This document shows, piece by piece, positions 1 through 64,000 of a stretch of DNA of 64,000 nt. Every line of letters begins with the position of its first letter. Position 1 is the stretch's first letter. A model generated the notes under the pieces. That model was not told the DNA's origin and did no database searches. It saw only the letters and a list, made by a program, of their open reading frames with translations. The translations under genes and the position numbers were made by a program. The DNA is taken from assembly GCF_030028105.1 (NCBI RefSeq), contig NC_092379.1, positions 19,569,309 through 19,633,308 of the forward strand. Reading direction: 5' to 3'. Origin of the DNA: Mobula birostris (lineage: Eukaryota).

Positions 1-1805
1 CTCCGAAACGACTATGTTCGCTCCGTTAAAAATATTGACCAGATATTCACTTAGCGTTCATTAAACATCATCCCAGTTTGTAATTTACTCTGGGAAGTGC
101 ATGTATGTTCAGCAGTCCCTCCAAGACAGTTTATCCAAAGACCTGCTGTTAGTTCCTGCGTATTCATTTCATTGATTATTATCTCTGCAGTTAAAGCCTT
201 TCAGACTGCTAACAGATCTGCCAGCCTTGTGTGAGTGGCAAAGTTTGTCATGTGTGTTTCTGCCCAATATCTAAACCATGAATAAATCTAGTGAATAGTG
301 TCAGCACTGAACACATTGCTGCAGGTCACAGGGCATCACTGTCTACATATTGTCCCTTCTTTCTGTAGCTCTCCACTTTCTGAATGAGATCACTAAATGT
401 CTTCACAAAGTTGATGAAATATCTTTCCCTGTCAATTACCTTTGTATATTTGAAACTGCGGACCAATCCAGAATGTTCTGTCATCTGTACAGTAGAAACT
501 AGAATACACATACACCTATAACCATTTGAATGTCTGTCTGCCTGTCTATATAATGAAGGACAGAACCAACCAGGCAACACTTCCAGCCCCTCATGTTTGA
601 GTCACACAGTTGTATCCCAAAACATACCGGCACGGAACACTGGCAGCCGAATGCTTTCCGTACCTTCTTTATTGAACTTTGATTGCACAAACACAGGCTG
701 ACATTCAACCTCTCATGTAGTCTACAGAAGTTTCCAACAGGATCAGACCTGACACTAGGAAGTTTTTAAAAAAAACTGCAGGATCTCAGACATGTTAGTA
801 ATTTATTTTGATGTATTTAATCATGGAAATATATATTTCCATTTTGAGCTAATGAGAAAGAACTTGCAGGTAACCTTGCTTGTTTCAGGGAGATAAACCA
901 CATTGTTGTAGGATCAGCCACCAACTGGAGGTTGACCAGTGGGGTAGCTGGCCACGGGAATCTCTGCTGCAAAGAACTCAGTGACCTGACACTTGTCCTT
1001 TTATCTGATGAGGAAGTGTAGCTTTAGAGGGTTCCTACTGGGAATGGACTTTTTTATTCATCTGAAGTTTTCCTGGAATATTCTGCTCTTACACCATTCA
1101 GGCTAATATTTACACCAGGAGTGATCTCTCCACATCTAAAATGTAAAGGCTTTTTACTTTTGGAAATGAAAGAGAAATTGTGGAAAGTGTTCAGTGGGTT
1201 AGAAAACACTTGTGAACAGAGAAAGGGATAACATTGAGAGAGCATCACAAGTGTACTCTGTACCATTGCTTCAGCACTAGTTCTGTGCCTGGCTGAGTAC
1301 TGTGCATCTCTCTGGTTTACTGGAACTCAACAACTGTCTGGTGTCCAGTTACATTCCACGATGCCTGCTCCAGTGAAACTCAGTTCCTCCAGTTCTGCTG
1401 ACAGATAGACTTGCTTCATGTTTCTGAGATGCTGGTGTGAGAACATTGACCCTGCAGTCATTATTTCATCATTCCCTCACTGACAAGGCCGGCATTCCTT
1501 GCTCTGCTCCAGCAGGTCCGTCACAGAGCAGTGAAGAGTTTGGTGTGGGAATTATGGATACAGGTAAACAGGGTAGGAAGGGCAGTGTCCTTCACCAAAG
1601 AACATCAGTGAAATAGTTTGTAATCTAAAACTGGCTTGAAGCATTGAATGAACTCTGATTCTTTCCCACTCTCTGCCTCTGCATTATTAATCCACTCACA
1701 CAACTACAACAATGCCAGACTTGCCGTTACCTATTGACCTTGCTTGTCCCTGGGTTGTGGCTGTGGCAGAGGATGTCAACAGTACAGTGAATCTCAGAAT
1801 CATAC

Positions 1806-2129
1806 CTTGAATGTTTTTCACATCCTGCCTGACACTGGTGTTGGAGGGGGGATGAGACACTGTGCATCTGAAAACTGAGCCTTCCTTCCACTCCTCTGTG
1901 CTCACGGTCAGGTCGTAGCTGGCAATGAAAGTCCCTGCCTGTTCCAGAGCAGTTGGTCTCACACTGGTGTTGGAAGAGATCAGAGAGTCCCCTTTCTCCC
2001 AGGTGGCGGTTATTTGGTCCGGGTAGAATCCAGAGGCAACACACTCGAGGGTGACCGTGTTCCCACTGTTGGTCTCTCCCTCTGGCGGTGGCAGCAGTCT
2101 GACTTTGGGACTTTTTGTCTCCAGTGGAA
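1806..2129 (-). CDS. IGHW: Constant exon C4'' (paralogue of C4')
   Basis: Open exon, ccatcag|TT...CAAG|gtatg. 9 nt differences from C4' over the shared 318 nt by hand count. Acceptor is shifted 6 nt upstream. Confidence 0.88.
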
Positions 2130-2212
2130 CTGATGGGCAAACAATGGAAATGTCAAACATTTTTACTGAGGTAACCAACGTTGTCCATTTTAATCGCTGA
2201 CCTCTTGCCCAC

Positions 2213-2515
2213 CTTTGGTACTTTTTGTCCGTGCTGATACTGGTGAGGTTGCAGAAGGTTGTTGGGCAGAGCAAGTGTACTCCACCCCACTGGTCCACTC
2301 CTCCACACTGGTCTGGAGTTGGCTGATCACTGTATCTTGGGTTCCTTCCTCTCTTGGTTTTTTGGTCACATTTGCTTTAACTTTCTCCCTCTCGTTCACC
2401 TTCCAGTGGATTTGGACCTGGCTCAGATCAGCACCCACAATCATACACACCAGAGTAGCGGTCTGGTTGATCCACATCTCTTCAATGGAGGGATTTTGGA
2501 TAAAGACGGACAACT
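2213..2515 (-). CDS. IGHW: Constant exon C3'' (paralogue of C3')
   Basis: 303-nt open exon with AG/GT sites. 6 nt differences from C3' by hand count. Confidence 0.9.
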
Positions 2516-3389
2516 CTGTAGATGAGTAATAGAAAACTTACAAACTGGACGATATCTATTGTCAGCTGGCTTGACAACTTCAGCTCAGACTTATCCTGAA
2601 GCTCAACTTGTACATAATTGTACAATGGGGTGAAATCAGGTTTGTCTGCAGAGTGGGTTTGCTCATCTCTGTTTACAACCTTTGAATGAGAAAACAAAAT
2701 CAAACATCAAGGAGCTTCTTTCCTTGGGACCCAGTTGGGTCACAACAGGGACTACAGGACAGTTGCCCAGCTACGTGACATTTAGCTGCTGCAATGCCAA
2801 TCAAATGCACTATCAGAGCTGTCAATTGCAATGAGAGATGCAGTTTCTCATGAAAGATGACATTTCCTGAAATCTTCTTGTCTTGGAGCATGTGAGAGCC
2901 TGTAGATCCATTTGTGACATTGAGCTGAATCAATGAGCTGCCTCATATCTGTTAGGACTGAGCCTGAGATTCCTCCAGAATGAAAATTCTGATGCTGACT
3001 TTCGAATCTCCCATGAAAAATCTCTCTTTTCATTTCTGTAACTTGCCTGCCCTAGTCAATGATCTCACTTTGTTCCAGTTGTCCTATTCACTTCATCTAT
3101 TTCCATCTCTACACTTTAAACCTCCCTGCCATTCTATTTCCTGTGGAGTCTGCTTTTCACTTGCTGGACACTCATAGACATGGCTTTGTGTCCCATCATC
3201 CACATCATTAGTAATATCAGTGAATAGTTGCAGGGCGGACAAAGATCATTGCAGGGCACTGCTCACGATTAAATCCTGCTGGGTTCAGTCCCCTGTCACA
3301 TGACACAGTGATAATGGAGTTGTTGATGAATGATTGCAAACAATTTCAGTCCATTAGTCTACAGCAGATCCAGGCATGGTGTGGGGCAG

Positions 3390-4985
3390 CCACCTCAGGC
3401 CAACATCGGGCAGTCACTGGAAGAGCTGAGCGCCGTGATCAGTAAACACGAAATAGCACACCCGGATATGAACCAGGACATCTTGAGGAAGTCTCTGAAC
3501 AATGACCACTCACATATCTCCTGTGGAACCAGAGGAGCCAACACTTGACCACTGTGATACCACCATCAACCACGGTTACCGTGCCAGCACATGGCCACAC
3601 TTTGGTAAGGCTGATCACCTGGATGTACTTCAACTCCCAGCATATAGGCAGAGACTAAAGACCACAGTGTTGGTAGCAAGGACCAAGAAGATATCGTCAA
3701 GGAAGGCAGAAGTGCGCCGACAGGACTTTTGAGTTGGTGAACTGGATAATATTACTGCACAACAATTTTTTCAAAAATGTTGCTTCCTCAGAGTTTTTTT
3801 TGTTTATGATAGACTGCTTGAAGTTGAACACAAATATAATTTCAGACTACTTGGATCACGTAGGAATTTGGAGAAACAACAAATTAACTTTTATTGAATA
3901 TAATGTGTTTAATTGCATAATGGTGCTGATGCTTTGCAATAGTTCAACTAAGATGAAAATATTTTGTTAATGATTTTCATTTGTGCTCAATGTCTGCGGC
4001 TTCTTGCTTAACTGTCCAACAATAATCCACCAGCATTGATGGATTCCAGTTGCCCTGATATCTTTTCTCCATGACCGCAACGTCCTGGTGAAACCTCTCA
4101 CCATGCTCGTCACTAACAGCACCAAAATTTGCAAGAAGTCTAAATGGGAGTGGAGAAAATGAATCTTTAGTGACATGTTGCATTTCAAGGTTTTGTATGC
4201 TTGAAGCATGCTTTCAACCAGCTGCATGTAGTTTGGTGCTCTATAGATACCGAGAAAAGTTTCAACAACTTCCTTGAATGACTTGTGATTTTCTCCGGTC
4301 CCACTAGAAATTCTTCAAATTGCCTGTCATTGATGACCTGTTTGATTTGTGGACCAACAAAAATGCTTTCCTTAATCTTGGCATCAGTTATTCTGGGAAG
4401 CATCTGTCTCAAATATCAAAATCCTTCATAGAAATGTTTGTGCCTGGTGATAACAAATTCCATCCTTACAGTCCTGAACCCAAAAATTATTACTAAAAAC
4501 TGTCCTGCCATGCAGCAGCCGCGCCGCCTAAGCATGCCTGGACAAGATAGGAATCTTTCCAGCTTACATTGTAGGCAACATTTTAATTGACTTGAATTAT
4601 GAATTGAAATAATAAACATAGGTGACTTCAAAAATGGTGCGTGATAGGGAAATTTCATGATGATTTTCATGATCGGTAGCCCAAAATTCAAAAGATACAG
4701 CTAAAGGTATTCAGGAAGCAAGATCTTTGTTGTCCAGTGTATTCAGAGACTTATCTTCAAATCGGAATGAATATGCCACAGTTGTCACCAACTTTGTCAA
4801 ACCCTGTGTGGATAAGTGTGTGCCTTCAAGAACATACCGGACATACCCAAAGCAAAAGCTGTGGATGGACCAGGAGATTTGTAGTCTGCTGAGGGCTCGA
4901 TTTATGGCAGTCCAGGCTGGTGATCTAGCATTAGACAAGAAGCCCAGGTACGACCTGCGGAAGGCTATTTTAAGAGTGAATAAAC
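3390..4985 (+). mobile_element. Rex1/Babar-clade LINE fragment (endonuclease region), split by a DNA transposon
   Basis: Degenerate frames read TLDHCDTTI...HFGKADH... and, after 4740, EYATVVTNF...CVPSRTYRTYP.QK.WM. Confidence 0.75.
3753..4739 (-). mobile_element. Internally deleted DNA transposon, probably Chapaev3-like (CMC superfamily)
   Basis: Transposase C-terminus MSLKIHFLHSHLDF...GAVSDEHGERFHQD...RYQG.W...DYCW. Termini (T)ACTGCACAACAA / TTGTTGTCCAGTG with a 3-bp TAT duplication that restores the Rex1 sequence. Family name is from memory of the motif and TSD length. Confidence 0.75.
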
Positions 4986-5295
4986 TCATCTTGGTCAAGA
5001 TGATGCCAGAATGCAATCCTCGCTCGGTCAACCTCTTCCAGATAGCTCATGAAGATATCCTTTTTTGGTCTTTTATGTCTGTTTTTCTCCTTAAATATGT
5101 TTCTGGGACTGTTAGAGTTAGAGACTGCGATTTTGATTGGAGATTGTTTCAGTGATCCAGTACCTTGCTGACTCTGAGAAGATCCTGAGCATGTACTCAG
5201 ATCACCTCGATGCAATGAAACTTCAAGACAGGGTGCGAGCCGACGATTGACTCCATTTCGCCATTTAAAGCATTCATTAAGCGAGTGAACGTCTT

Positions 5296-5828
5296 GGCGC
5301 CGATGCCTGTCTTTTGATCGCTGCTGGAGATGGATTCTGTGAGCGGCCTTTTGCTTTGTGTCTTGCTGTGACAGGCGGGTCGGCCTCTCTGCCTCGTGTG
5401 GTGTCCCTCTCCTGTCTTTCAATGAATGTCGGTGATATCGGAGATGGTATTGTGGTTCTGTATTTGTGGATTCGACTGTTGTGTTTATGGACTGTGGACA
5501 TTTTCAGACTTATATTCTGTGTTTTTTATCGCCCGTTCCTTTTCTGTTTTGTAGTGTGAGGGGAGGGTGTTTGGGGGTCGGTGTTCTGTTAGCTTTTTGT
5601 GTGGGGGAGGGGTTGTTTTGTGGGGTCGGTGTTACTGTTCTGTTTTGTGAAGGGGGGTATCGGGGGGGGATTGATGATTGGGATGCCATTTTTGTCAGTG
5701 GGGGGATGGGGTGAGTTTCATGTTTCTCTCTGAACGACTTTCATGTTCTTTCTTGTTTTCGTGGCTATCTGGAGAACACAAATTTTAAGTTGTATGTGGA
5801 TACAGGCTTTGATAATAATGAACCTTTG
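5296..5828 (+). mobile_element. Non-autonomous retroelement or LINE 3' end (second copy at 48666-49222)
   Basis: Two similar copies with a G/T-rich body, ATAATAA and a CTTTGA-type tail. Confidence 0.7.
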
Positions 5829-5924
5829 TACAATTCCAATTGAACTTAGTGAAGGAATCAGATGCCCTTCAGCTCTGTCAGACTTTTCAGGCCATTACTT
5901 CCTACAAGGTGAAACCTAACAACA

Positions 5925-7420
5925 TCACTGTGATGTTGTTAAACATGTTTTTTGCAGGTTTCTCAGTTATGTCCCATATCAGCACTGTCTTGATGTTCAG
6001 CAGTCACTTGGAAATGTTCCCCTTATTGCTGAATGCTGGTGTTATTCCACAAGAAGTATAGAATTCTGTCAATGCTTGAGTAATTCTAACAAAACATTCT
6101 TCTTTCTGGTATTCCTTGGGATCACTGAGTTGCCCTCTTGGACTGAATTCAGTGTCCGGCACGTGGACCAATGTAACTTTAGCAATTTGTCTGATCCAGG
6201 ATTTAAACACAAAGCATAACAGATTGGACAGGAGACTGGTTAGACCCCTGTGTCTTGTCTCACCGATTTGTCTTGTGCCCAACATTATCAAAGGGTCATC
6301 CGTCCTTTGACAGAGTCAATTTAGAATTTCAGCCCCGTTCACCTTCATCACCTCATGCCTCACAGCCATTGGGTGAAAAACAGGTTCCAGTTCTTGCTGA
6401 CTGGAGTTAGACAACAGGGAATCTGGCCAAAGAAACTGGAATTGGGATCTGAGTCACACTGAAGCAACAATGTACACAAATGAATGAGTGTATGGACAAC
6501 CAGAAACACAGGAGATTCTACAGATGCTGGAAATCTTGAACAACACACACAAAGTGCTGGAGGAACTCGGCAAGTCAGGCAGCATCTATGGATGGAAATA
6601 AACAGTCGATATTTTGGGCTGAGAGATTTCACTGGTACAGGAAAGGAAGTGGGCAGAAGCCAGAATAAGAAGGTGGGAGGAGTAGAGAGGAATACATTCT
6701 GTCAGATGAGAGGTGAGACCAGGTGAGGGGGAAAGTGTGTGGATGGGGGAGGCAGTATGAAGTAAGAAGCTGGTAGGGCATAAGTGGAAGAGATAAATGG
6801 CTGAAACAGAAGGAATCTGAGAGGACAGTGGACCATGGAGGGAAGTGCAGGAGAAGGGGAACCAAATGGAAATGATGGGAAGGTGAGGAGAAACGAAGGG
6901 ATGAGGGTGTATCTAGTATGAGGAATAGAATAAAAGGGAGAATAAAGGAGTGGGGGATCATTACTGGAAGTTAAAAAATAAGTATTCATGGAATCAGTTT
7001 GGCAGGTACCTGGATGGAATATGAGGTGTTGCTACTCCAACCTGACTTTGGCCTCACCATGGCAGTAGAGGAGCCCATGGACAGACATGACAGAATGGGA
7101 ATGGAAAGTCAAATTGAAATAGGTGGCCACGAGGATAATAGAAATGTGATTGGAGAGGTAGTCAGTTTCAATCGTGTTTTATTCTCTCTCTGTTAAACTT
7201 CAATCCCAATGGATACCAGAGGCAGGTCTAGAATCCAGTAAGTGGATAGCAATAAAATTCATTGATGAATTGTATACACAGCCAATCACTTTATTTCACA
7301 CTTTCCTGCTGAACAATGATACTGTTGGGTAGAACCATCGGAGAATGTTGCATTGAGATTACTCTGGTAAAAGAACTTTGGCACAGGCTCCGAAAAACAG
7401 CTGGGACATTTTCCACCTGG
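5925..7420. repeat. Segmental duplication, homologous to ~62400-63920
   Basis: Colinear match (e.g. cactgtgatgttgttaa...aaacagctgggacattttc), including a shared Penelope-derived fragment. Confidence 0.93.
6500..7130. mobile_element. Penelope-derived fragment shared by both clusters (also ~63010-63650)
   Basis: Contains the common elasmobranch repeat caaaatgctggaggaactc...gcagcatct and purine-rich sequence I associate with Penelope termini. Confidence 0.55.
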
Positions 7421-7657
7421 AAATGGAAGATTCATAGATTTAAGTGTTAGATATTTTTACCTCTTTTCCCATGCTTGGAAAAAAGGAAGCCCCACATATT
7501 CCCACTCTGTATCCTTTGTATATCACATCCTATCAGGATGAGGTTTTGTCAGCCATGATAAATGAATGTGCTCTCTGAACCTGGTCGAGGATCTGAGGAC
7601 ACAAGGTCACAACATTCACTTGAGGATTGGGCATCAATTCAAAATTAATCCCGCCAC

Positions 7658-7725
7658 CTACATTTCAGTGAGTGGACAATCGACAGAAGAGTCTGTCAGG
7701 AAACACTGGAAATAGACTCTGGAGA
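7658..7725 (-). CDS. Putative short-form secretory tail exon (VSRVYFQCFLTDSSVDCPLTEM*)
   Basis: ttgtatttgtttcag| acceptor, phase-1 reading gives two Cys and a stop. Position lies between the C1/C2 region and C3-type exons, where IgW has its short-form secretory exon. AATAAA on the minus strand at 7290-7295. Identification rests on position and composition, not an alignment. Confidence 0.6.
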
Positions 7726-7892
7726 CTGAAACAAATACAAAATTGCAGAGATATTTTTTTGAGGAACTAACACTGAGAAGACAGTGAAAAGGGAACAGGG
7801 AGATTTTCTCTAGAAGGTAAAACATGGGACGTGAGCTTTGCTCACTAAATTATTTTCATTATAACTACAAACATAGACAACTAAAATTATTG

Positions 7893-8349
7893 CACCAACA
7901 CCGCCGGGTATTTCTTATTTTTTTTTAGCATGTCATACCAGACATTCAGCCATTCTTGTCTGGCACGTGGTGTCAGGATTAACCGGGTCACGTTATGAAC
8001 GTTCCTGACTCGACCCTTATATATTTCTTACGAGGCCAAGTGGCTATCTCGACACTCAACCGGGCACGGATGGACAGCGTGCTCGGGAGTGGGGAAAGCG
8101 TGCTAGGGAGTGGCCTAACCAGGATTTGAACTCGGGAACATTCGCTCCAGAATCTGGTGCTGATCTCACTGCGCCACCAGCCGGCCTGGAATTTCTTAAT
8201 TCCAGTGGTGATGTCCCCACTGTTAGTGGACCATGTCTGACTGATGCTCTCAGGCTAATAGTCCTTGACCAGACAGAGGAGGCTGATGCCTTGGTCAGAT
8301 TCTGTGTTGCAGGAAGGAGTGATGTAGACTGATGGTGCGGACTTGACCT
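7893..8349 (-). pseudogene. IGHW: Truncated IgW C1 exon (EVKSAPSVYITPSCNTESDQGISLLCLVKDY*PESISQTWSTNSGDITTGIKK[SINE]YPAVL)
   Basis: ttccatttcag|AG acceptor, light-chain-binding-type Cys (PSC), CLVKDY motif and Trp. In-frame TAG at 8255-8257. Ig similarity stops after PAVL. Confidence 0.88.
7918..8183 (-). mobile_element. tRNA-derived SINE inserted in C1
   Basis: A box TGGCGCAGTGAG, B box GAGTTCAAATCC, A-rich tail, and a degenerate 15-bp target-site duplication (TAAGAAATTCCAGGC / TAAGAAATACCCGGC). Confidence 0.85.
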
Positions 8350-11300
8350 CTGAAATGGAAAGAAATTCACAGGCGGTTCTCTGAATAAATGCATTACTGG
8401 CAGAGAAAGGAGACGTTTTATAAAGCAGTAATTTTCAAAATTATTCACCTCATGAAACAAAGCTGATATCACTTTAACACTCAGCTGTGAGTCTGTGTCG
8501 CTGAGGTAGGAGGGTGTGGATCAATCCCACAGTGGCAACTTGGACTCACAATCCAGGCCAACACTTCAGTGCAGGACTGAGGCAGTGACCCAATGTCCGA
8601 TTGGTGGAATTTCAGCCAAAATACCAAAGTGACAATCTGTCTCTCCTCCAAATACAATTCCTGATTCGGAAAAGTCTGTTAGCACTTGATCAATGAAGTT
8701 TACAAAAAAAGTAAGATTTAGAAGTAACTTATTGGAATAATTCTGATGTGTTCAGTGTTGCTGTTGATGAGAGGAGTGATTGGTGTGGATATAGTGGTAC
8801 CGAGTCTCCAGCACCATGTGTGCAGTATAGTGGAGGTTGGGAAATGGACTCTGCTTCTGAAATTCAACTCAACAGACTACATGATGCAGCTGACACTGCC
8901 TCACATATTTACCGTGTGTGACTGAGCAAGAATTCCAACCCCACTGAGTCTGTGGAAACTACTGGCTAACTGGGAGGGAATGGTAACTTGCATCAGAAAG
9001 GACAGAGGAACTGTGGAAATACATTAGCCCAGACTCTGTGGAGAAGTGTCGGCCAACACAACCGACAGTGACGATGAGATTCCTGGGGAGATGGAGAATT
9101 CTCAAAGTGTTGTTAGATGTAGGTGATATTCTCACTGAACGACCAGCCCAGAGAGGAAATGCAGGTTGTAGCAATTCCCAACCACTTAAGGTGTGAAATA
9201 CACTTGAAAGCACTGTTTCTTAATTCATTTCACAGGAAAAGGAGACGTGTTGACTTACTAAGGTAGGTAAAGGTGTGAAGATCAATTAGCTAATTGACCA
9301 ATTGACAGCTTTGACAGGTGGATATGTGGTTTGACCAGTTGTCAGAGTTACCTTGAACAGTGTTGTGGACGGGGTTTGTTCTGACCCACTGACGTGACAT
9401 CATTCACCTCATGATTGACACTGTCAATGACAGATTGTTGCTGGTGGATGAGGTTAAAATCACCCAAAAAGACTGTGTGGACACAGCAGGAGCTCTGGGA
9501 GTAGGAGACTAGCGGGAGGGTATGTGTCAGACAGTGTGAATTGCAGTAGATGAGGGCTTTGTTGCCCAACAGTAAGATGGTCAACAGACACACACAGGCT
9601 TCAGATCGATTCTGCTATTGGAAGGGCAGCAAATTCAACATTTGGAGTGGAAGTGGAGTGGTGGGAAGGTCACAATTTCATTCAGGGGCAAAATAATGAA
9701 ATATTCACTTCACAGTCATCACTCTGGGACAAAAGGCATAAAATATTGAAATCTGGGTTTCAAATAGAATGAATATAAATCAATAACTATCTCAAGTAGA
9801 TAGGAATCGATATAATGTAACTGGTCAGTAATGACAGCTGCATTGTTTTGAACCATTTCAAGGTGACACTGGGGACTGTGAACTCAGAATATTTGCCTTC
9901 CTGAGCAAACACAGGTGATTCAGGTTGACAGGACAGGCAGAGCAGAGAAATGGTCCCTTTCTCATTCCTTTCAGACTGGGCCTGAAACAACCAGTGAAAT
10001 GCTGACGTCAGACTCCCCATCGGGGACACAACTTCTGTCAAACAGTGGGACAAGCTGACCTGTGCTGTGATTGAAGTGTCACAGGAGAGAAAGCACAGGG
10101 CACGGTGCCAGCCGGACCATGTCCACACAGACCGGGCTGAATGGTGCTGGTTCAAACCTACTGGGACTCTCCCCACACTCCTACACTGGGAAAGGTGGGA
10201 CCTCACTGGGTTTCTGGATGCTGGCGGCTTGTGTTGAGGTGTATCAGGGCCTCAGCATTAAATAGCCTCAGACAACACCCTGCTGGGACTCTGGGTCCAG
10301 AACACCCTGATGGGAGGGGTTTGTCTTGTGTTAATGCTGTCATGTAATTAACAGGTTCAAAATGACTTGGAAACATTAAAGTTAATGTAAATTCCTGTGG
10401 CAACAATTAATTTTGCATATTTTGTTTAAAATAATAAATCTGAAATGCATTAAAACATAATAATCAGACAGAAATCATTCCTGGATAAATCCCTTCCCAA
10501 GGCCCGGAATCCCCAGTCAGATGAATGGAAAATGTGATCCTTTGTCAGGTCCGGCCTGTGAGGGAAACGTGGAGGTGGATTTCCCAGTGTTACCCTGGGA
10601 ATTCCAGCAGGACCTGGTGCCATGTGGTAGTGTGTGGTCACTGCTCTGGAGGCATATGTCACTCAGTAAATCCTGGGTTACAGTGGTCTGTGGAACTGTG
10701 AGATTGACTCCAGTGTAAGTGACTGAACACTAGTTGTCTCCTTCAGACTGCCAGGCACAACCAGCACCATTTCACCCACACTATCCTCAGCTTCCCAGGT
10801 AGACAGTACCTCAGGAAAGGGCTGGTCAGCTGTAGTCTGAGGAGCCTTACTGCTCTTTATCAGTGTCAACCCCTGACAGCAGGGGAATTGCTGGCCCAAA
10901 GACTAGGGACCATATGGATGGCCTATAACTAACTAGTGTTTGTCTATTCATCTACTGCATAGTCAGAATTCAGCTGAGGACTTCTCAGTGGTGGGGAACT
11001 TTAGGAATTGTAGGCCGAAAGTGACCATTCCCTTCCAACATCACCCAAGCGGACTAGATTGTCATGTCGTAGTTCAGTTTGTGGGAACAAGATGCAGACA
11101 AGTTGGAGGTTTAGTCCCCCACATGAAGTGACACACTGCAGAAGTACTTGCTGGGTTGGAAAAGGCTCTGGGATGTTCTGGGGTTGTAGAAGTCAATGAA
11201 AAACAGATTGTTTTCTTGAAAATAAATTCTGTAAAATAACACTGGAAACAGCGTAGTTGCCAGAAATCAGACTGACGGAGTCTGGTGAAAGGTCACTGAT

Positions 11301-11500
11301 GTGAAACATTCACTCTGCTTCTCACCCACAGATGTTCCCTGAGCTGCTCAGTGTCGGCAGTGCAGGAGGCACAATAATGTCAGTCGGTGAGATTTGCAGC
11401 TGAGGATCTTTTACATCCCGGGACCAGCAGGTGGTAAGTACAGTTCTGTCTGGATCAGTGATCCTCTGGGTCTTTGTAAAAACACCCAACAAACTGACTG

Positions 11501-11844
11501 CAGGGTGCTGGGGTGAAGAGAGGAACTGGATCTGGGTGGGTCACAGGGTGCTGGGGTGAAGAGAGGAACTGGATCTGGGTGGGTCACAGGGTGCGGGGGT
11601 GAAGAGGGGAACTGGATCTGAGTGGGTCACAGGGTGCTGGGGTGAAGAGGGGAACTGGATCTGGGTGTGTCACAGGGTGCTGGGGTGAAGAGGGGAACTG
11701 GATCTGGGTGGATCACAGGGTACTGGGGTGAAGAGGGGAACTGGATCTGGATGGGTCACAGGGTGCTGGGGTGAAGAGGAGAACTGGATCTGGGTGGATC
11801 ACAGGGTGCTGGGGTGAAGAGGGGAACTGGATCTGGGTGGATCA
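11501..11844. repeat. G-rich minisatellite, 8 copies of a 43-bp unit
   Basis: Unit CAGGGTGCTGGGGTGAAGAGGGGAACTGGATCTGGGTGGGTCA starts at 11501, 11544, 11587 ... 11802. Confidence 0.97.
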
Positions 11845-14298
11845 GCTCAGAAGAAATTTGCAATGAAATAACACTTGGGAATTTGTACGAAATGATTGCC
11901 CAGAATCAGCAGATTGGGGGAGACTCAGTCTGATTTTAGTCTGTATTGTACTAAGTGGATAGAATATCGGGTAGTATGAACGAAAGATGGGCAGTTTTAT
12001 TTATTCATCCTTTGGGATCTGGGCTTTGCCGGTAAAGTCTGAATGAATTACGCATCTGAGCTGCTATTCAGAGGGCATTTGGAGACAAACACATTGATGG
12101 ATCAGGAGTCATAAATAGGCTCGAAGGGTCAGGATGACAGATCTCCTTCCCTGAGGGACATCAGTAAAACTGAAGGGTCATCATTACCAATGATTGGATT
12201 TAAAAACAATACCAATTATTAAAATCTTGGAAATCCGACCACAGATCCAAATCTGTATTATGAACTGAGTATAAATTTGTCAATTTTGTTATGGTGGTAT
12301 CCGTGGACTGTTCATCCATCCCTCTGCACTACTCATTTGCTTTGATGTACTGTCCTGTTTCCAATCACTCCAAATCCAACCTTGTGCCTGTCCATTGGAT
12401 CACTGTGTCCACGGTGTCCTGGACAATATTTCTCCTTCAATAACATCACCAGAACAGACTGTCTGATCGTTCTCGCCTTGCCGTTTGTGGATTCTGCTGT
12501 ATGCAGAGTGGCTCCACATTCCCGACTCTACAACAGGGCTGTACTTTGAAACAACTTCATTGCCTGTGAAGACCTCGGGGGCACCATGAAAGGTGCTCTG
12601 TAAATGTCAGCACTTTATCTCACAACCACTTTTACTGAATCACCAGCAACACTGGTTAACGTAGGAAAACACTTGTTAAACAAACCCAGTCGGGGGATGG
12701 AGGAGGACAAGAAATTAGATGAGTTGCTCTGTCTGTGAACTAAGAATAAACAGTTCATTTGAACAGTAAAGTTCAACTCGTGTCCCGTGAGTGTGTGATG
12801 GGACAGGTTGGGGGAAGCTTCACTCTGTGTCTAATCTCTGCTGCCCCTGTCCTGGGAGGGATGGGACAGTGCAGAAGGATCTTTGTATCTAATCCGTGGC
12901 TGCCAGGACAGGACATGGGAGCTGTGATCTGCATTTAACTCATGCTCTGTGTACTCTGGGGTGCTTGTTGGAATCCCTTTGAGGAAGAATTTCCCAGATT
13001 TACAAGATAAATACTGATTCCATTGAATGATAGAGCAGAGAGTGAGGCCGTTCATCCTATTGTTTCTGTGCTTCATTTAGCTGAGCAAACCCAATAGACC
13101 CATTGGTCTCTCTGCTCTTCCCTGTATCCCTACAAAAGGCGGATCTCATCCTGTTCCCTCTCCACACTCACTATTGGCCATCACCATCATTCAGGCAGTG
13201 TGTCCCAGATCACAAACCTTCATCAACAAACCTTCCCTTAAATGCTCCCCTATTACACATTATTGAATTGAACGCTTCCCTCCCCACCCCACCTGCACCA
13301 CTCCCCACTCCCCCACCCAACAATGCAAGGCTGCCCGGAACGTGTGAAGGAATTGAGATTTCAGTTCCCCGCCTTACCTTTCCTGCACCACTTCCCCACT
13401 GCCTTCCCAACTCCAAAAATCTTCCCCACAGTACCCCACCTCCTCGCCCATCAGGGAATAAAACTAAAACCTCAATTCCATCAATTAATCCTGGGATATC
13501 GCCGATACTTTTGCTGTATCCCAGGACGGACCTCATGCCGGACATTACATGATGGGACTGACACCCACCTGTACCCTGGGGATATTGAGACATCAACCAG
13601 ATCATACATGTGTACACCGTTCCCTCAGATTATGTCTGAATCCCATTACCTTCAACATGAAAGCAGCCGACAGTAAAACCCAATCCCAGTAATTTGACAC
13701 CGAACAGATCCATTGTTGTCACTGACAGGGAACAAGTTCAACTGCACTGAAACGCTCAGCCCCTGAACGTGGCTTCAGTCGGTGCTGAGGATCAGAAGCC
13801 AGACTTGAACCAAACACTGAGCTCACTCAGCACAATCGGCCGGTGTCAAGGCACAGTCTGGTGACAAGATCCGACCCCATTCCCCTGAGCCTGTTCCCGG
13901 TCTGTGGACAGTGCACTGGTGGGTGGGGTGTGTACCCTTGTACTGTTACTGTGCTCTAGAGAAACCCGCCGGTTCGGGGAGATTCATGTACTTTCTCTAA
14001 ATATCAACATGATCCCTGTCCGGACCGGGAGCAGCCGCTTCCAGGATTTCCATCCCAAACTCTGTCCTTGTCTCTTGTTGGCGTGTGAGTAAAGGCATTT
14101 TCACAATTTCCCTGTCTGCGGACACCGGCTCCCGCCATCCCCCAGAATCAGAGTCAAATCCTTTTGGGCTTTTAATTGTCCAGAAATGGGCATTTGCGCC
14201 CAGCAGTCCGAGTAAGGCTTCAGGGATTTGACTCTGGGAAGCAGCAATGCGGAATCCGTGGAGACAGACTGCGCTGCAGACGCTCCTTTGTCGGGACC

Positions 14299-14326
14299 AA
14301 TTTCTGTTCAGCTCCCCATCACCGTG
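14299..14326 (-). promoter_or_regulatory. Recombination signal sequence, 12-bp spacer (CACGGTG-12-ACAGAAATT)
   Basis: Heptamer matches CACAGTG at 6/7 and nonamer matches ACAAAAACC at 6/9 at exactly 12 nt. At a 23-nt spacer the nonamer would be TCCCGACAA, a poor match. Confidence 0.75.
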
Positions 14327-14631
14327 CTCCCACCCTCTCGCACAGTAATAGGTGGCAGTGTCGTCCAGTCTCAGGTTGTTCATTTGCAGATAGACGGTGC
14401 TGCTGTCCTTGGAAACAGTGAACCGGCTCTGGACTCCAGGCGCGTTGTACTTGTTACCACCACTCGATATGTCTGCCAGCCACTCCAGCCCTTTCCCGGA
14501 GACCTGTCTCACCCAGTCCATGCTATAGCTGCCGAGGCTGAACCCACTGACCGCACAGTCAGTCTGTGAGAATGTCCGGGCTTTACCACAAGCTGACTCG
14601 GGCTGTGTCAGCACGACGGCGGACCGCACGC
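14327..14631 (-). CDS. IGHV: VH exon with appended D-like bases (AVVLTQPES...[28 protein letters not shown]...RFTVSKD...[12 protein letters not shown])
   Basis: ttgacag|GC acceptor, conserved Cys, WVRQ, GLEW and YYCAR. Full CDR2 region, so a conventional VH rather than VNAR. FR1 is partly frameshifted (see findings). Confidence 0.93.
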
Positions 14632-14740
14632 CTGTCAATAAAAAAGAGCAGAAATTAATAAAATGTTCTACGGTCAGGGGTTCACAAAGCCTCTGAGAAA
14701 CAGCCGGTCCCGGTTGAGCGACAAGCGGCGGGACACCCAC

Positions 14741-14786
14741 CTGCCAGACAAGACAAGGGAAGACAGAAATAAGGCACGACCCCCAT
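14741..14786 (-). CDS. IGHV: VH leader exon ([16 protein letters not shown])
   Basis: ATG at 14786, 46 nt, CAG|gtgggt donor, phase 1. Joins in frame to GVRS at the start of the V exon across a 109-nt intron. Confidence 0.85.
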
Positions 14787-16199
14787 CGCCCTGAACACTG
14801 AGCCGGACTTGGACACTTTGAGATCGGCGGCTTCAGCTCAGGCCGGCTTTGTCCGGAGTCGCAGTGAGCGCTGTTTAGATAGGGACGTGGGCTGTGAGTG
14901 AGAGAGGGAGCCGCGGTTTGAACAGGCTCTCACACACTGAAACCAGAGGCGCAGCTTCCTGTCCCCACCCACAGCAGCGATTTCAATTCCCCAAAAGATG
15001 TTTGTCTCTGCAACAGGCGGCAGGTCAGCGGCAGTGACCAGATCCGGATTAAAGATCGGTCACTCTCTGTTCGATTCATCAATTTCAGCGATGAACAGTT
15101 TGTTTAAACTGAAACACACAGAATCCCAGCGAGAGAGAATGAGAGACACCAGTCAGTGGACAGATATCCCCCGGGAGACAGGGACTGAGAGACCAGTCAA
15201 TGGACAGATATTCTCCTTAGAGACATAGGCTGAGACTGTCTTTGCAGGAAAATGTATGAAGCAACAAAAAGAGTTACCACACAATCTTCTCACTGCTCCC
15301 ACACCACAAGAATCAATGCTAAACAGCGATTCCTGGTGGAAATGGGTGGAATTTACACTTATAAGGTATTTTCTCTTTCAGGGACTTGGCACCATGAATT
15401 TCAGTGCCAAGCCCTCAGCAGTTCTCCCCACAAAATCTTTTTAACCTGTTTCAGTGTGATACTGGTTGAGGGATCAATGTCGGAACAGATAGTGGAGAAC
15501 TTTCCAAACCTTTTATGTCCACCTGACACAACAACCCCACCATGGCACCAGTCAAAATAGTGAAACTTCTTTTTACCCCCAAGAGGACCACAATCTTGTC
15601 AAAGAGTATCGTGGCTTGTGTGCCTCAGTGAACCAGAGATCTATGTTGGCTTACATCGGGGTCTTGTGCTTTAACTCTAGGTAGGGTCACCCATGCCAAA
15701 CATGTGAAAGGATAGAGACTGAACAAAGAACGGTTCACCGTTCCTCCAGGTTTGGAGTTTCAGGTCAGGGTTAGTGAACCTGACTTATTATAAAGAAAAT
15801 TGTAATTGTTACGAGATGCTCCCAACTGTGCCAGCTTCCAGGATTTAGACTCTCCAACTCTCTGGAGCACAGATAGCCGGTAGCAGCCCCTTTAAGGTTC
15901 AGGATGATCCCGCTAATTGATAATCATGTTTTGGGCACCAAGAATTGAGTATGAAAGAACACCTGAACTGATGTTCAGTGCTCAATGGTAAACCCTACTA
16001 GTGATATTGTCTAGCATTCGTTTTGTGCTCAGACCTGGATCCAGTTTGATACCGTGTCTCGATCTTTGTTTCGGATACTCCAGCATTTGGGTCCAAAGCA
16101 TCTTCATCAAAGACTCTTGTCGCAATTATGGAAACAGCAATGAAGAATCCTTCTACATCTGAGTGTGATAGTGTTCCCTAGTCACCACCCGGGACTTGC

Positions 16200-17700
16200 A
16201 TGGCTGACAGGAGTGAAAACAGAGAGGAAACTATGGGTATGGTGAAGGGAGCCATGAACTTTGCCAAGACCAAGACCAAAAATGTTTTTTGGAATTGTCG
16301 AACCATGTACAACACTGTCAAGCTAGCACAAATAACTACGGTAATGTGTCATTACAGCCAACGTACACTGGCATCAGTGAAAGCAGATGGTCAGGGTCTG
16401 GCAGACTAAAGGCAGCAGCTGGTGCAGCAGTTTTATATTCAGGAAGGGAAGATGGTCAACGTCATGATGGATTAGCTGTCATTTTGAAGAAAGGCATTGA
16501 GAAGTGCCCAGTGGAATGAAAACCAATCAACAGTCGGCTGGTGAGAGTCAGGCTGAGAGTGAAGCAAGTGAACATGACTGTGATCCAGTGTTATGCTCCA
16601 AATAACAATAGTGACATTGAAGAATAGGATATCTTCTACAAATGGTGGAGTTAGAGTTAACACCACGCCGTGACATAATCATCATCATTGGAGATCTAAA
16701 TGGCAAAGTGGGAAATAACAACTCACACTTCATTAGGGCCATGGATACGCAAGGATATAGGATGATCAATAACAATGGTGTTAAGTCTGGTGGAATTCTG
16801 TGCCATGAACAATCTGGTCACAGGAGAGACCCTCTTTCCACACCATGAAATAAACAAACTGACATGGAGCTTACCCAATGGATGTGACAAGATCCAGATT
16901 GACCATTTGATGATAAATGGTATGTGGAGACGATCCTTGCAGGGTGTAAAGGTGAAGAGAGGAGCAGATACAGGAAGTAATCATCACCTTGCTGTAGCAG
17001 TGATGAAACTCATGCTGAGAAGCACTGGGACCACAGCACATGTACAAAGATGTTTTGATGTTGAGAAACTTAAGAACATCAGTGTGAGATCTGCCGTCAC
17101 CATTCAGCTTAAGGAGGGCTTTCAGACATTGGCGGGGATGTGTCAGTGGACAAGATCAACACGATGTAGAAACAGATTGCATCAGTGTTCAACAAGAGCA
17201 GCGAGGCTTGTCTACATTACAGCGCTGGAAAAAATAACAAAGCATGGATACAGCAGGAAACATGGACAGACTTAGAAGAAAGATGGAAAATTAGGAAGAA
17301 AATGTTCAATGCAAAGTCAACACGAATTAAGGTGAAACTTTAATTGGCATTCACTGAAGCTAGCAAGAAAGTGAAGAGCTTCTAAGAGTGGATAAGAGAG
17401 TCTACATAGAAGACCTTGCACTGGCGGCCACAAGAGCGCCAGTCGATGTGATCAGGAAAATATATACAAGATTTCAAAACTGGTATGTGGAATGTTCCAA
17501 GCCAGATCCAGTAGCCCCATGAGAGGCAAGAAGGGTCTGCTTTTGACAAGAGAATGGAGCACGATGGACAGGGTATTTCAGAAATTTACTGAGTAGACGC
17601 AGAGGACCTCTGGAAGGCCCCCTGTTCAGATTAAGTCAAGCCACATCTCCGACAGGAAGCTGAGAAGGAAATATCCCAATATCACTGTCCAGTTTCACCC
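16200..17700 (+). mobile_element. RTE-clade LINE remnant (AP endonuclease)
   Basis: Broken frames IQCYAPNN, IIIGDLNGKVG, KLTWSLPNG...QIDHLMI, GADTGSNHHL. Confidence 0.85.
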
Positions 17701-18224
17701 ACCTGTCAAGAATGAGAATATGAAATGTGTTTCTAGTAAATCAACAGCTGCACACAGAGATCCTGTTCAAATTTATCCCGTGCACTGAGTGTCAGAAGGA
17801 GGTTGTTCAGCCCTTCCGTCTATTCCCTCCAAAGCTGACCTATGTCCGATCTCCATTTACCCTCCTTGGCTCATATTTTAATAATTGAACTCAAACAAAA
17901 TTCTATTAATTTTGAAATTTCAACTGACACCTCCTCCCACCGCCCCTCACCCCAGTCTTGACCAGTTCCCAGGAAGAGATCCAGATTTCCAGTGCCCTGT
18001 ATATCCTGAAGTAACAGATTCTTTGTGTTATTCTTCTGCACCATTCTTGAAAGTTTTTAAACTCCCCAATTACACTGGCCTTCAATTTTCCACACTTCGG
18101 GGAACAAGAGACCAGACCTAATATTCTATCCTAGTCCCACTAGCACTTCACTGGCCCTGGTCCACACAACCCCTTCTCCAAGGGGTGATGCCAAGAATCA
18201 CAGCCAGTGCTTCAGATGTGGTCT

Positions 18225-19460
18225 AATTAGAACATAGAATACAGCACATTACAGGCCCTTCAGCCCACAATGTTGTGCCAACCCTTAAACCCTGCCTCCT
18301 ATATAGCCCCCCACCTTAAATTCCACCACGCACCTGTCTAGTAGTCTCTTAAACTTCACGAATGTGCCTGCCTCCACCACTGACTCAGGCAGTGCATTCC
18401 ACGCACCAACCACTCTCTGAGTAAAAAGCCTTCCCCCTTGAACTTCTCACCCCTTACCTTAAAGCCATGTCCTCTTGTATTGAGCAGTGGTGCCCTGGGG
18501 AAGAGGCGCTGGCTATCCACTCTATCTATTCCTCTTATTATCTTGTACACCTCTATCATGTCTCCTCTCATCCTCCTTCTCTCCAAAGAGTAAAGCCCTA
18601 GCTCCCTTAATCTCTGATCATATTGCATACTCTGTAAACCAGGCAGAATCCTGGTAAATCTCCTCTGTACCCTTTCCAATGCTCCCACATCCTTCCTATA
18701 GTGAGGTGACCAGAACTCCAATTGTGGCCTAACCAGAGTTTTATAGAGCTGCATCATTACATCGCGACTCTTAAACTCTATCCCTCGACTTATGAAAGCT
18801 AACATCCTATAAGCTTTCTTAACAACCCTATCTACCTGTGAGGCGACTTTCAGGGATCTGTGGACATGTACCCCCAGATCCCTCTGCTCCTCCACACTAC
18901 CAAGTATCCTGCCATTTACTTTGTACTCTGCCTTGGAGTTCGTCCTTCCAAAGTATACCACCTCACACTTCCCCGGGTTGAACTCCATCTGCCACTTCTC
19001 AGCCCACTTCTGCATCCTATCAATGTCTGTCTGCAATCTTTGACAACCCTCTACACTATCTACAACACCACCAACCTTTCTGTCATTTGCAAACTTGCCA
19101 ACCCACCCCTCCACCCCCACATCCAGGTCGTTAATAAAAACCACGAAAAGTAGAGGTCCCAGAGCAGATCCTTGTCGGACACCACTAGTCACAATCCTCC
19201 AATCTGAATGTACTCCCTCCACCACAACCCTCTGCCTTCTGCAGGCAAGCCAATTCTGAATCCACCTGGCCAAACTTCCCTGGATCCCATGCCTTCTGAC
19301 TTCCTGTACAAGCCTACCATGTGGAACCTTATCAAATGCCTTCCTAAAATCCATATAGATCACATCCCCTGCATTACCCTCATGTATATGCCTGGTCACC
19401 TCCCCAAAGAACTCCATCAGGACTGTTGGACATGATCTGCCCTTCACAAAGCCATGAAAT
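18225..19460 (-). mobile_element. CR1 LINE, reverse transcriptase 3' part
   Basis: 363-aa ORF with DFRKAFDKVPH, GVRQGSALGPLLF and LERVQRRFTR, plus the CR1 3' end. Confidence 0.95.
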
Positions 19461-47687: not shown

Positions 47688-47830
47688 CTTGACAACGGTG
47701 ACGAAGGTGCTGTAGAGGAAACTGATGATAAACAGAACGGCAAAGGCAGCAACTGTAAGCACATTGTCATTTCCATCCACGTGTCCCTGTTCTTCCTTCC
47801 CCTCCTCTCCTGTCAAGTCTGTGCAGGTTT
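47688..47830 (-). CDS. IGHW: IgW transmembrane exon (ETCTDLTGEEGKEEQGHVDGNDNVLTVAAFAVLFIISFLYSTFVTVVK)
   Basis: Missed by the ORF track. attctttcag|AA...GTCAAG|gtaact, phase-1 entry. Acidic spacer followed by a hydrophobic span with the antigen-receptor LF..S..YST.VT pattern and terminal VK. Confidence 0.9.
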
Positions 47831-60363: not shown

Positions 60364-62399
60364 CTGTGGGTTAGAAATGGAAATGCTCAGAATCGTACTG
60401 GAGATATTTCCATTGGTTGTGTTAGGTCCAGGCAGATCATCAGTACTTGACAGCTGCATTTAATGCAAACAGAATAACAGAAACACCCGGGGCTGAGTCA
60501 CGTGTCTCATATTCCTATAAGTTTGATTGAGAAAAGAAATTCAGAACAAAGGATATGCTAACGAGGTTTCGAATCCCTTTCTAATAACTGTACCAATCGG
60601 TTCACTGTGAGATGGAGCTCTGTGAGACAGAGAAGCATGCAGATTTCTCAGCAGAGACACAGCTCAGTATATTCTTTGCTTGGAGACTCAGTGCCATTGA
60701 TTAGTAACAATGAACACTGTGAATCAATGAGAATCCCTTTCTCCATCTGGGCTGAGCCTGGGATTCACTCAGTTTAATAACTTCACATCCCGACATTCCA
60801 GTCTCACTGTGACTGCACCTCTCCTCATCTCTGCAACCTTCACAGCTCATACAAACTTCAGACAGCATTGTATTCTTTCAACTCTGCTCACTCATACACC
60901 TGCACTACTCCTGCTGGTGCCTGTGGTTTTAGCATTCTTGCTGACAAACACTGAAGCCTCTGTCTCTCTTGAAATGAGCAGCCATGGTCAGAATGTATCC
61001 ATAAGTTAGGGACTGATGAACTGGCAACATGGGTTCAAATCCCAACCCGGTGGATGGGAGTTTAAATTCAATTCAGAAATGCCTTCTGGAGTAAAATGAA
61101 GACTCTGGAAGAATTTGTAGTGTTATTTGCTGTGGTAACTTCTGAAAAGAAATCTCATCTGGGCTGGCTGCTATGTGATTCCAGACCTGCAGCAATACAG
61201 CTGAACCTGAATCACCATCAGGAATGAGCCAGCAAGTCCCACTGTTCAAGAGCAATCAGTGATTGATAGGAAATGGTAAATTAAATAAATAGCCCTTTGT
61301 TCAGGTTACTGTCACTCTTGTGTGATTACACTCAAGTGAAGTTGTTGAGGTCGTCTCCCAATGCACTGTTGGCCAGAAAGAACTACCATCTATAGATCAG
61401 TGAATTTGGACCAGGGATCATTTCCAAATAAGAAGACACATGCGAGATGTTCTTTGGTTGGATATAACATGCAGGTCTGTGACTGTTGGGGTCTGTCTCT
61501 GCCTTGTGTGATCAAGCTGATTGCCGATTGAGAACAAAGAGCCATAGATTACTAGATGTCATTCCTCGATCAGAGCCAATAAGAAGGTGTTAGAGGTCAA
61601 TCAGGTGACTATAGCCAATATCACTGGAATGTAACATTTGAATTAGTAAGGAATGAACTTAAAAGCAGGTGCTTCAAGTGTGCTGGCAGCAGTGGCTCTG
61701 TAGGAGATTCACTTTCGTGGATATGAGGTGCCTCACGGATGTGGAGATTCAAAATGGGGCACCAAGGAACACGTGGCTAGCAGTAAAATCTCCTTTTTGA
61801 CTGGTATAATCTTTTTAATATTTGACTGTTCATGGAAGGTCAGGGAAACTCAGCAGGTGTGCACACAGGTATTGGTTGTGTAAGTTCACATGTTCTTGCA
61901 TTGAGACAATAAAGGTATTTGTCGGTAAATCCAATTCTCTCTGTGCCTCCCTGATCATTATTACAAGAGATGATATTTGTAACATCACTATTGTCTGTTG
62001 ACTTACATTGCAGCTCTCTGCACCTTGTGTACACCATTTACACACTCGGTCACCTTCAGGCAGGTGGGGTGTTTTTGCTCTTTGACATTTAGTGTGGAGG
62101 CTGATTGTGTTTGTGTCACAGTTGAGACCTTCAATGAGACTGTGAGTCAGTGTCTTTGTCTGAAGAAAGAGCAGATGTAACACACACGGTTCCAGTCTGA
62201 CTGGGACGGATCATCTGACAAAGTATGATATGTATTTCTCAACATTCCTCATTTCAGAAAGATTATGAGCGATTTTCTTTTAAAACAGAAAATCTGTGGG
62301 TGTAGTCTAGATGATCATTGTTGTCGTGTAATATCATAAATATGCAAACCTAGGTGTACACTGAAGGGTCACTGAATTATGAACCTCAGTTTAATCAGC

Positions 62400-63920
62400 A
62401 CTGTGATGTTGTTAAGCGTGTTTTCTGCAGTTTTCTCAGTTGTGTCCGATATCAGCACAGTCTTGAGGTTCAGCAGTCCCTGGGAAATGTGATCCCCACA
62501 TAAAACCTGACAGAGTCAGGATCGCTCCCCTTATTGCTGAATGCTGGCATTATTCCACAAGAAGCATATAATTCTATCAATGCTTGGGTAGTTCTAACAA
62601 AACATTCTCCTTTCTGACATTCCTTGGGATCACTGAGTTTTCCTCTTGGACTGAATTCGGTGCCCGGCACGTGGATCAATGTAACTTCAGCAATTTGTCT
62701 GGTCCAGGATTTACACACAGAGCATGCCAGATTGGACAGGAGACTGGTTGGACCCCAGTGTCTTGTCTCACCAATTTATCTTGTGCACAACATTTTCAAA
62801 GGGTCATGGTCCTTTGACTGAGCAAATTTGGAATTTCAGCCCTGTTCACCTTCATCACCTCGTGCCTCACAGCCATCGGGTGAAAAACAGGTTCCAGTTC
62901 TTGCTGACTGGAGTCAGACAGGAGGGAATCTGGCCAAGGAAACTGGAATTGGGATCTGAGTCACACTGAAGCAACAATGTATACAAATGAATGAGTGTAT
63001 GGACAACCAGAAACACAAGAGATTCTACAGATGCTGGAAATCTTGAACAACACACACAAAATGCTGGAGGAACTCGGTAAGTCAGGCAGCATCTGTGGAT
63101 GGAAATAAACAGTCAATATTTTGGGCCGAGAGATTCCACTGGTACTGGAAAGGAAGTGGGCAGAAGCCAGAGTAAGAAGGTGGGTGGAGCAGAGAGGAAT
63201 ACATTCTGTCAGATGAGAGGTGAGACCAGGTGAGGGGGAAAGTGTGTGGACGGGGGAGGCAGTATGAAGTAAGAAGCTGGTAGGGATAAGTGGAAGAGAT
63301 AAATGACTGAAACAGAAGGAGTCTGACAGGATAGTGGACCATGGAGGAAAGTGCAGGAGGAAGGGAACCAAATGGAGATGATGGGCAGGTGAGAAGTGTA
63401 GGGATGAGGGTGTATCTAGTATGGGGAATAGAACAAAAGGGAGAATAAAAGAGTTGGGGGGGGGTGTTACTGGAAGTTGCAGAAATCTGTATTCGTGCCA
63501 TCAGGTAGGCAGGTATCTGGATGGAATATGAGGTCCTGACTTTGGCCTCCCCCTGGCAGTAGAGAAGGAAATGGACAGACATGTCAGAATGGGAATGGGA
63601 AGTCAAATTGAAATAGCAGGACACAAGGATATTGAAAAGTCAAATTGAAATGTGGAGGGGAGAGGTAGTCATTTTAAATAACGTATTTTCATCACTGTCT
63701 GTGAAACTTCCATCCCAATGGATACCAGAGACAGGTCTGGAATCCAGTAAGTGGATTGTAAAAGAATTCATTGATGAATTGTACACAGCCAATCACCTTA
63801 TTTCACACTTTCCTGCTGAACAATGATACTGTTGGGTAGAACCATCGGAGAATGTTGCATTGAGATTACTCTGGTAAAAGAACATTGGCACAGGCTCCGA
63901 AAAACAGCTGGGACATTTTC
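62400..63920. repeat. Segmental duplication, homologous to 5925-7420
   Basis: Reciprocal of the match above. 63920-64000 begins a further tandem copy of ~63545-63630. Confidence 0.93.
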
Positions 63921-64000
63921 TCACCATGTCAGCAGAGGAGGCCATGGACAGACATGTCAGAATGGGACTGGGAAGCCAAATTGAAATAGATGGCCATGAG

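Follow-up and report, generated by a model that had tools for sequence, protein, structure and literature searches.

Concerted evolution by non-allelic gene conversion is a feature of tandem multigene families such as the globin and MHC genes and the arrays of Ig V and C segments. Among cluster-type antibody genes, Zhang, Du Pasquier and Hsu reportedly judged all eight nurse shark clusters to be functional. The background on IgW isoforms and on switching between clusters is given in a review (PMC4279169), where alternative secretory exons and inter-cluster switching are cited for nurse shark IgW (Zhang, Du Pasquier and Hsu 2013). The locus analyzed here, from Mobula birostris, is like nurse shark IgW in having cluster-type genes and a Cys-rich short-form secretory exon.

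The window is a stretch of 64 kb, and all of the genes of interest are on its minus strand. It contains the 3' part of a large IgW (IgD-type) heavy-chain cluster and, downstream of this, a second cluster. The large cluster has a Cys-rich Sec exon near 63.9 kb, C3 at 60361-60062, C4 at 59976-59656, C5 at 58320-58027 and C6 with a classical secretory tailpiece from 57353. The label '' is used for the decayed cluster with C3''-C4'', and the label ' for the compared cassette C3'-C4' (50945-51654) of the neighboring intact cluster, in which the C3' exon spans 51654-51352, the C4 acceptor is 6 bases further in, and the TM1' exon is at 47688-47830. In the decayed cluster, C3'' (2213-2515) and C4'' (1806-2129, without a secretory tail) are separated by an intron of 83 bases (2130-2212) and are flanked by the upstream intron (2516-2869) and by the first part of the C4-to-TM1 intron, the 3' flank of C4'' (1639-1805). 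The same cluster has an open, Cys-rich short-form secretory exon, Sec'' (7286-7416, stop at 7288-7286), the remnant of a C1'' exon (7903-8349), and a leader (14786-14741), VH exon (14631-14327) and 12-spacer RSS (14326-14299) that together span 14299-14786. C3'' and C4'' are IgW (IgD-type) heavy-chain constant exons of the C1-set, and their IgW context is provided by Sec'' in their own cluster and by C3-C6, the tailpiece exon and TM1 in the neighboring one. No TM exon of cluster '' was found in the window, where only TM1' (47830-47688) is present; by collinearity, TM1'' should be about 525-670 bases left of the window.

The two exons are intact. Neither contains a stop or an indel, both are phase 1, and their splice borders are canonical (AG at 2517-2516 and GT at 2212-2211 for C3''; AG at 2131-2130 and GT at 1805-1804 for C4''). 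Both translations matched the C1-set family (Pfam PF07654; 1.9e-11 for C3'' and 2.6e-17 for C4''), each over profile positions 1-84 of 86, and the Cys pair and Trp of the Cys-Trp-Cys core were seen in each. No disabling lesion was found within C3'' or C4'' themselves; the lesions of the cluster are in C1'', together with the absent C2 and J.

The 5' half of the cluster is broken. The sequence-only reading had listed a stop in C1'', a SINE-like insertion with diverged repeats and an absent C2, and all three were found. The C1'' exon begins at 8349 and reaches a TAG at 8257-8255, where CLVKDY-W/F-PE was expected. An insertion of approximately 267 bases (8183-7917) has a tRNA-like head and an A-rich tail and lies between direct repeats of 14 bases (8197-8184 and 7916-7903) with mismatches at 2 of 14 positions, and it is from the head, the tail and the repeats that the SINE label was assigned. 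ARAGORN called no tRNA in the insert, Rfam gave no match in it or in 1-9000, and no second copy was present in the window. A point new relative to the earlier reading is that the C1'' frame is lost after '...PAVLVQ', leaving the exon without its 3' part and its donor. A profile constructed from the eight C domains of the window found no further C-type domain on either strand between 2537 and 14000; the cluster lacks both C2 and the C3-C6 of the main array. The VH is germline-joined to D, with an open frame and a Pfam V-set match of 1.7e-10, and its RSS is composed of CACGGTG, a 12-base spacer and ACAGAAATT. No J was found within 6 kb after this RSS, and neither a J segment nor a J-type RSS was found between V and C1''. 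The interval from V to C1'' also holds a tandem repeat of approximately 86 bases in about four copies with 94% identity (11501-11844).

Sec'' differs from the copy near 63.9 kb (about 63800-63925) at 5 of 131 positions. It is part of a block, 5923-7417, that matches 62396-63925 at 87%, with homology resuming only at the cassette. The Sec'' homology was observed to stop exactly at its 5' border, and the sequences differ between the copies at the position where the acceptor is expected.

The divergence between the '' and ' cassettes was determined by global alignment against 51654-50945. The C3 exon differed from C3' at 6 of 303 positions (2.0%) and the C4 exon from C4' at 10 of 324 (3.1%) with the '' acceptor or at 9 of 318 with the bounds used earlier, so that the exons combined gave 16/627 or 15/621 according to the choice of C4 acceptor. 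The latter recount is identical to the earlier figure of 15/621 with no stops or indels. For the adjacent intron (2516-2710), previously put at about 11%, 21 of 194 positions differed together with one gap (10.8%), and the contrast with the exons was strong (Fisher p = 5.7e-6). The whole upstream intron, to 2869 where homology to the ' cluster ends, was at the old level of divergence (45/353 = 12.7%). The C3-C4 intron differed at 6/83 (7.2%) and the 3' flank at 9/167 (5.4%), which makes the latter low-divergence non-coding DNA. Beyond the flank, the divergence was 4.4% over 1135-1634, falling to 1.5% over 1186-1385, and 11.0% over 286-1134. A second low-divergence non-coding island in the C4-to-TM1 intron (1186-1485; 8/300, 2.7%) has stops in all frames and is beside stretches at 14-19%, while an island of 4.2% in the Sec'' block (6350-6799) is among stretches of 10-17%; both islands are candidates for additional conversion patches or for conserved non-coding elements. 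Non-coding divergence was patchy in general, with 1-20 differences per 100 sites, and over-dispersed (chi-square p = 4e-5). A scan with windows of 627 sites found no non-coding window as close to ' as the exons (minimum of 29 versus 16 differences).

These exon data count in favor of the proposal that C3''-C4'' is a working membrane module under purifying selection, to which the VDJ-C1-C2 of a different cluster would be joined in trans. The joining could occur by read-through splicing, with the cluster 45 kb upstream as the source, or by AID-linked inter-cluster switching as in nurse shark. The two open exons, with their canonical splice sites, encode full C1-set domains, no other 627 sites in the paralogous block are as little diverged, and the pairwise dN/dS is 0.34-0.49. 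The last value derives from a Nei-Gojobori estimate for '' versus ' of dN = 0.021 and dS = 0.043 (omega of 0.49, falling to 0.34 when the first six C4 codons are omitted), and it includes the constrained ' lineage. Moreover, the synonymous divergence was itself low (6/143 = 4.2%) relative to the 11-13% of the outer introns. Since the synonymous sites, the C3-C4 intron and the 3' flank were all below that level, selection at the protein level does not by itself explain the identity. The low divergence of the cassette extends beyond the exons into the adjacent non-coding DNA, and the pairwise contrast between exon and intron mixes constraint on the working ' neighbor with recent exchange on the relic ''. 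For these reasons, and from the transcript data described below, trans use was considered unlikely.

Changes were assigned to individual branches with the aid of three Logan genomic contigs of approximately 1 kb each (L001-L003), which carry sibling cassettes. They were found by a protein search with the C4'' reading frame, which matched one Logan cluster of genomic read-through ORFs; the corresponding search with the C3'' ORF gave no match. The contigs come from other samples of uncertain species and are possibly chimeric between paralogues, and L003 alone covers the upstream intron. The adjacent non-coding DNA was counted as the C3-C4 intron plus the 3' flank at 1663-1805 (226 sites). Changes private to '' numbered 7/627 in the exons, 2/226 in the adjacent non-coding DNA and 12/213 in the upstream intron, and those private to ' numbered 6/627, 8/226 and 9/213, respectively. 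On the '' branch, therefore, exons and adjacent non-coding DNA were alike (p = 1.0), and the upstream intron differed from the adjacent non-coding DNA (p = 0.005) and from the exons (p = 5e-4). The ' branch gave the opposite partition, with the exons differing from the adjacent non-coding DNA (p = 0.014) and the latter resembling the upstream intron (p = 0.8). No change private to '' was found in the C3''-C4'' intron, which showed 0/82 differences from L002 and 1/83 from L003, and 2/143 were found in the 3' flank.

The three-point branch lengths gave the same picture. For the upstream intron they were 6.1% for '', 4.2% for ' and 2.8% for L003; for the C3-C4 intron plus 3' flank, 1.3%, 4.0% and 0.9%; and for the exons, 1.3%, 1.3% and 1.6%, respectively. 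The closest pair in the upstream intron was ' and L003 (7.0%, versus 8.9% and 10.3%), as judged from three sequences of which L003 is a short contig, and in the C3-C4 intron and flank it was '' and L003 (2.2%, versus 4.9% and 5.3%), again from three sequences only. Because the branch lengths drop in '' and L003 and not in ', it was deduced that '' and the L003 type share a younger ancestor inside the tract only. The ' copy thus appears to show the signature of exon-specific constraint, and the '' copy that of one uniformly young block running through intron and 3' flank, with apparently recent ancestry in common with an L002/L003-type cassette. The earlier reading had proposed purifying selection or gene conversion; the conversion half of the proposal was supported, and selection on the '' copy was not (7/627 versus 2/226, p = 1.0).

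The exon changes themselves point the same way. With L001-L003 as references, the exons have eight changes found in '' alone, of which five alter the amino acid and three are silent. In C3'' they are the silent changes at 2508, 2379 and 2334 and Q>K at 2402; in C4'' they are V>L at 2124, K>N at 2068, V>A at 2006 and V>D at 1913, the last being the residue in strand E of C4'' that is read in SYDLT. The private letters on the plus strand are 1913T, 2006G, 2068G, 2334A, 2379A, 2402T and 2508G. This proportion of replacements, and the equality of exons and adjacent non-coding DNA on the '' branch, argue against trans use. The omega of the '' branch was approximately 0.5, a value from small counts that is inseparable from 1 and fits drift and mild constraint alike. 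The probability that eight random substitutions would leave no stop is 0.72, and the intact '' frames are therefore unsurprising. When the main-array C3-C4 pair (60361-59656) was tried as an outgroup, 7 replacements and 2 silent changes fell on the '' branch; this pair was set aside because it is 25% diverged and conflicts with the closer L001-L003 at several sites.

Some observations on the siblings may be added. L002 and L003 differ at 8/324 in the C4 exon and at 1/225 in the adjacent intron and flank, and exons that diverge faster than non-coding DNA point to mosaic exchange or diversifying change among cassettes. Expressed siblings were also found to have two C4 acceptors 6 bases apart (window 2123-2131 and 51262-51270). 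The change at 2124 in '' also deletes the second AG, which is the acceptor used by the ' copy, so that '' lacks the downstream AG, ' lacks the upstream AG, and L002 and L003 have both. The choice of acceptor, which varies by cluster, adds two residues to the start of the membrane C4 domain or leaves them out. Read-through past the C4 donor (1699-1805) would add a tail of 36 residues, GMILRFT...GIVVVV, before a stop; this frame is open in '', ', L002 and L003, with a Cys near the end of the tail in L002 and L003 and a Ser there in '' and '. The tail might be an alternative secreted end, or merely young flank. In the sibling copies, the depth in the RNA-like runs described below is still raised approximately 600 bases past the C4 donor.

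The borders of the young block were placed as follows. On the 3' side, the block ends at an indel site (1634-1639), where '' lacks 204 bases found in ' (50570-50773), L001, L002 and a contig of one RNA-like run (X3, with a loose end at 1639). The 5' end is within approximately 20 bases of the C3'' border, as the last private exon change is at 2508 and the first change outside is at 2527. A conversion tract ignoring exon borders, which the sequence-only reading had named as the finding that would speak against its own proposal, thus largely describes the block, which continues through the intron and into the 3' flank; its 5' end is the part that does not fit this description.

From these data, C3''-C4'' is probably, although by no means certainly, a relic cassette refreshed by gene conversion, whose intact frames do not come from use. 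What was directly observed is a tract-like pattern on the '' branch, a broken 5' half and siblings that are expressed; from this we infer that conversion was the mechanism, that it came after C1'' had died, and that the cassette lacks function. The proposed history is the following. Because the outer non-coding DNA is 11-13% diverged, cluster '' would have arisen by duplication of the neighboring cluster, and its 5' half would then have died. Later, approximately 0.9 kb (roughly 1639-2520), from C3'' through the intron of 83 bases and C4'' to some 170 bases of the 3' flank, would have been homogenized with a sibling cassette, whether by non-allelic gene conversion or by patch recombination of an equivalent kind. 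The partner would have been of the sibling kind seen in L002, in L003 and in the abundant transcripts, and the transfer may have been in either direction. The tract presumably halted at the 204-base indel on one side and near the C3'' border, where homology between copies falls off, on the other, as would be expected if extension of the heteroduplex was stopped by heterology. After the exchange, '' would have drifted, with a change of approximately 1.1-1.3% both in the exons and in the adjacent non-coding DNA. The short time since the exchange would account for the intact '' frames, and no evidence was obtained that '' is in use. That C1'' broke before the exchange is marginally indicated by the 2/14 differences between the direct repeats on a rough clock. 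Several features count against conversion. A 5' tract end at the exon border is also predicted by exon-directed selection; the counts are small; and all of the '' splice sites and frames are intact, with the exons being the least diverged 627 sites.

The mosaic could instead be an assembly artefact, in which reads of different IgW paralogues were merged in a repetitive locus. The '' exon letters at 1913, 2334 and 2379 indeed had no independent confirmation in the four RNA-like runs or in L001-L003. Independent contigs, however, match both '' flanks with 0-1 differences, and the eight private changes occur across the two exons without switching to another known haplotype. The 204-base deletion and the outer flanks also fit a single diverged locus. 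An artefact was accordingly regarded as very unlikely.

The transcript data were obtained from four small runs flagged 'RNA?' that match the stretch, the contigs of which were compared with 1-6000; no run recorded as RNA contains the stretch. The four runs behave as RNA, with depth 10-50 times higher over the exons. The 83-base intron was spliced out in all four (joint 2129>2213), with run X1 also having the '-type joint 2123>2213, and in all four the C4 donor at 1806 was joined to 26-30 bases identical to the start of TM1'. Sibling cassettes spliced C3-C4-TM1 are thus expressed, at a depth of 150-6600. The dominant contig, of 629 bases and from X3, has 15 differences from '' and matches L003 at 1913, 2334, 2355, 2379 and 2381, from which it was deduced that the abundant messages come from sibling cassettes. 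The '' letters at 1913, 2334 and 2379 were absent from all contigs of the four runs, which can drop rare variants, and no joint or loose end onto 2515 with '' letters was present among the contig ends listed. Of the diagnostic residues proposed in the sequence-only reading (HWKV, NVTKKP and SYDLT), the scoring covered SYDLT, at 1913. An unspliced X5 contig over 2102-2240 was considered as '' pre-mRNA and rejected, as its two differences match the L003 type.

The non-coding flanks of '' gave a different result. Those at 829-1176, 2688-2953, 3173-3386 and 4630-4958 were present with 0-1 differences at a depth of 11-185, and a contig over 2688-2953 with one difference had a depth of 7-61 in the RNA-like runs. 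About half of 9001-19000 (shares of 0.45-0.52) was likewise present in runs of the same organism, shares that do not tell which half is covered and do not separate an own promoter from upstream read-through. This suggests low-level transcription of the '' locus. In the siblings, the ratio of intron to exon depth is approximately 5-7%, and if the same ratio held for '', its exons should have assembled. The missing '' exon contigs suggest sterile or unstable transcripts, as far as can be judged from contigs, which drop rare variants. Two further observations were made in this region: the X1 and X3 contigs join 3668 to 5884, skipping 2215 bases (3669-5883), and bins 3801-4800 had very high depth in all runs. 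The segment 3669-5883 is probably a transposable-element insertion absent from another copy or allele.

Trans use gains some support from the '' flanks and the half of 9001-19000 in the RNA-like runs, and from the switching between clusters reported for nurse shark IgW and IgM (PMC4279169). It is opposed by the absence of '' letters at 1913, 2334 and 2379 from contigs in which siblings reach a depth of 150-6600, and on this evidence, from contigs that can drop rare variants, the earlier suggestion that the VDJ of another cluster uses the module found no support. In addition, the only place for a switch would be between C3'' and the dead C1'', and the resulting chain would lack C1 and C2.

The same transcripts bear on a further explanation, a membrane protein without V and C1 encoded by leader-C3''-C4''-TM, in which selection on the product and on its splicing signals would keep exons, intron and flank together. 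The leader donor and the C3'' acceptor are both phase 1, C1'' without a donor would be skipped, V-less IgW transcripts have been reported in sharks (PMC4279169), and the locus region is present in the RNA-like runs. No joint onto 2515 from 2516-6000 was found among those listed, however, and no '' exon letters. The working ' copy has 8 changes in intron and flank versus 2 in '', the reverse of the prediction. This explanation is wholly speculative and was considered extremely improbable. Taking the two routes together, that the orphan cassette is still used, whether through the VDJ-C1-C2 of another IgW cluster or through its own leader spliced to C3'', is very unlikely; if true, a non-rearranging cluster would still be supplying a distinct B-cell-receptor stalk.

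Refreshment by conversion, the favored interpretation, is an ordinary process for a multi-copy locus and involves no new mechanism. The data indicate that IgW membrane cassettes of this ray evolve in concert and that decayed clusters join the exchange, which bears on counts of functional IgW genes and on dN/dS tests of membrane-only domains. The case may also serve as a guide for cluster-type antibody loci in which a dead gene retains conserved exons.

Relative to known systems, the locus is like concerted multigene families in its patchy divergence and in a tract of younger ancestry that covers exon and intron and ends at a large heterology. It would also resemble refreshed pseudogenes, in which a recent overwriting or exchange makes a dead copy appear intact. 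Unlike textbook cases of conversion, the tract was deduced from two reference copies and three short public contigs. Compared with the expressed sibling cassettes, which are spliced C3-C4-TM1, the '' cluster is without a working C1, C2, C3-C6 or J. As in nurse shark, the VDJ of one cluster could in principle join the C exons of another; unlike in nurse shark, the 5' half of '' is broken, and the contigs of the four RNA-like runs contained no chimeric transcript onto '', the abundant messages in them being those of its siblings.
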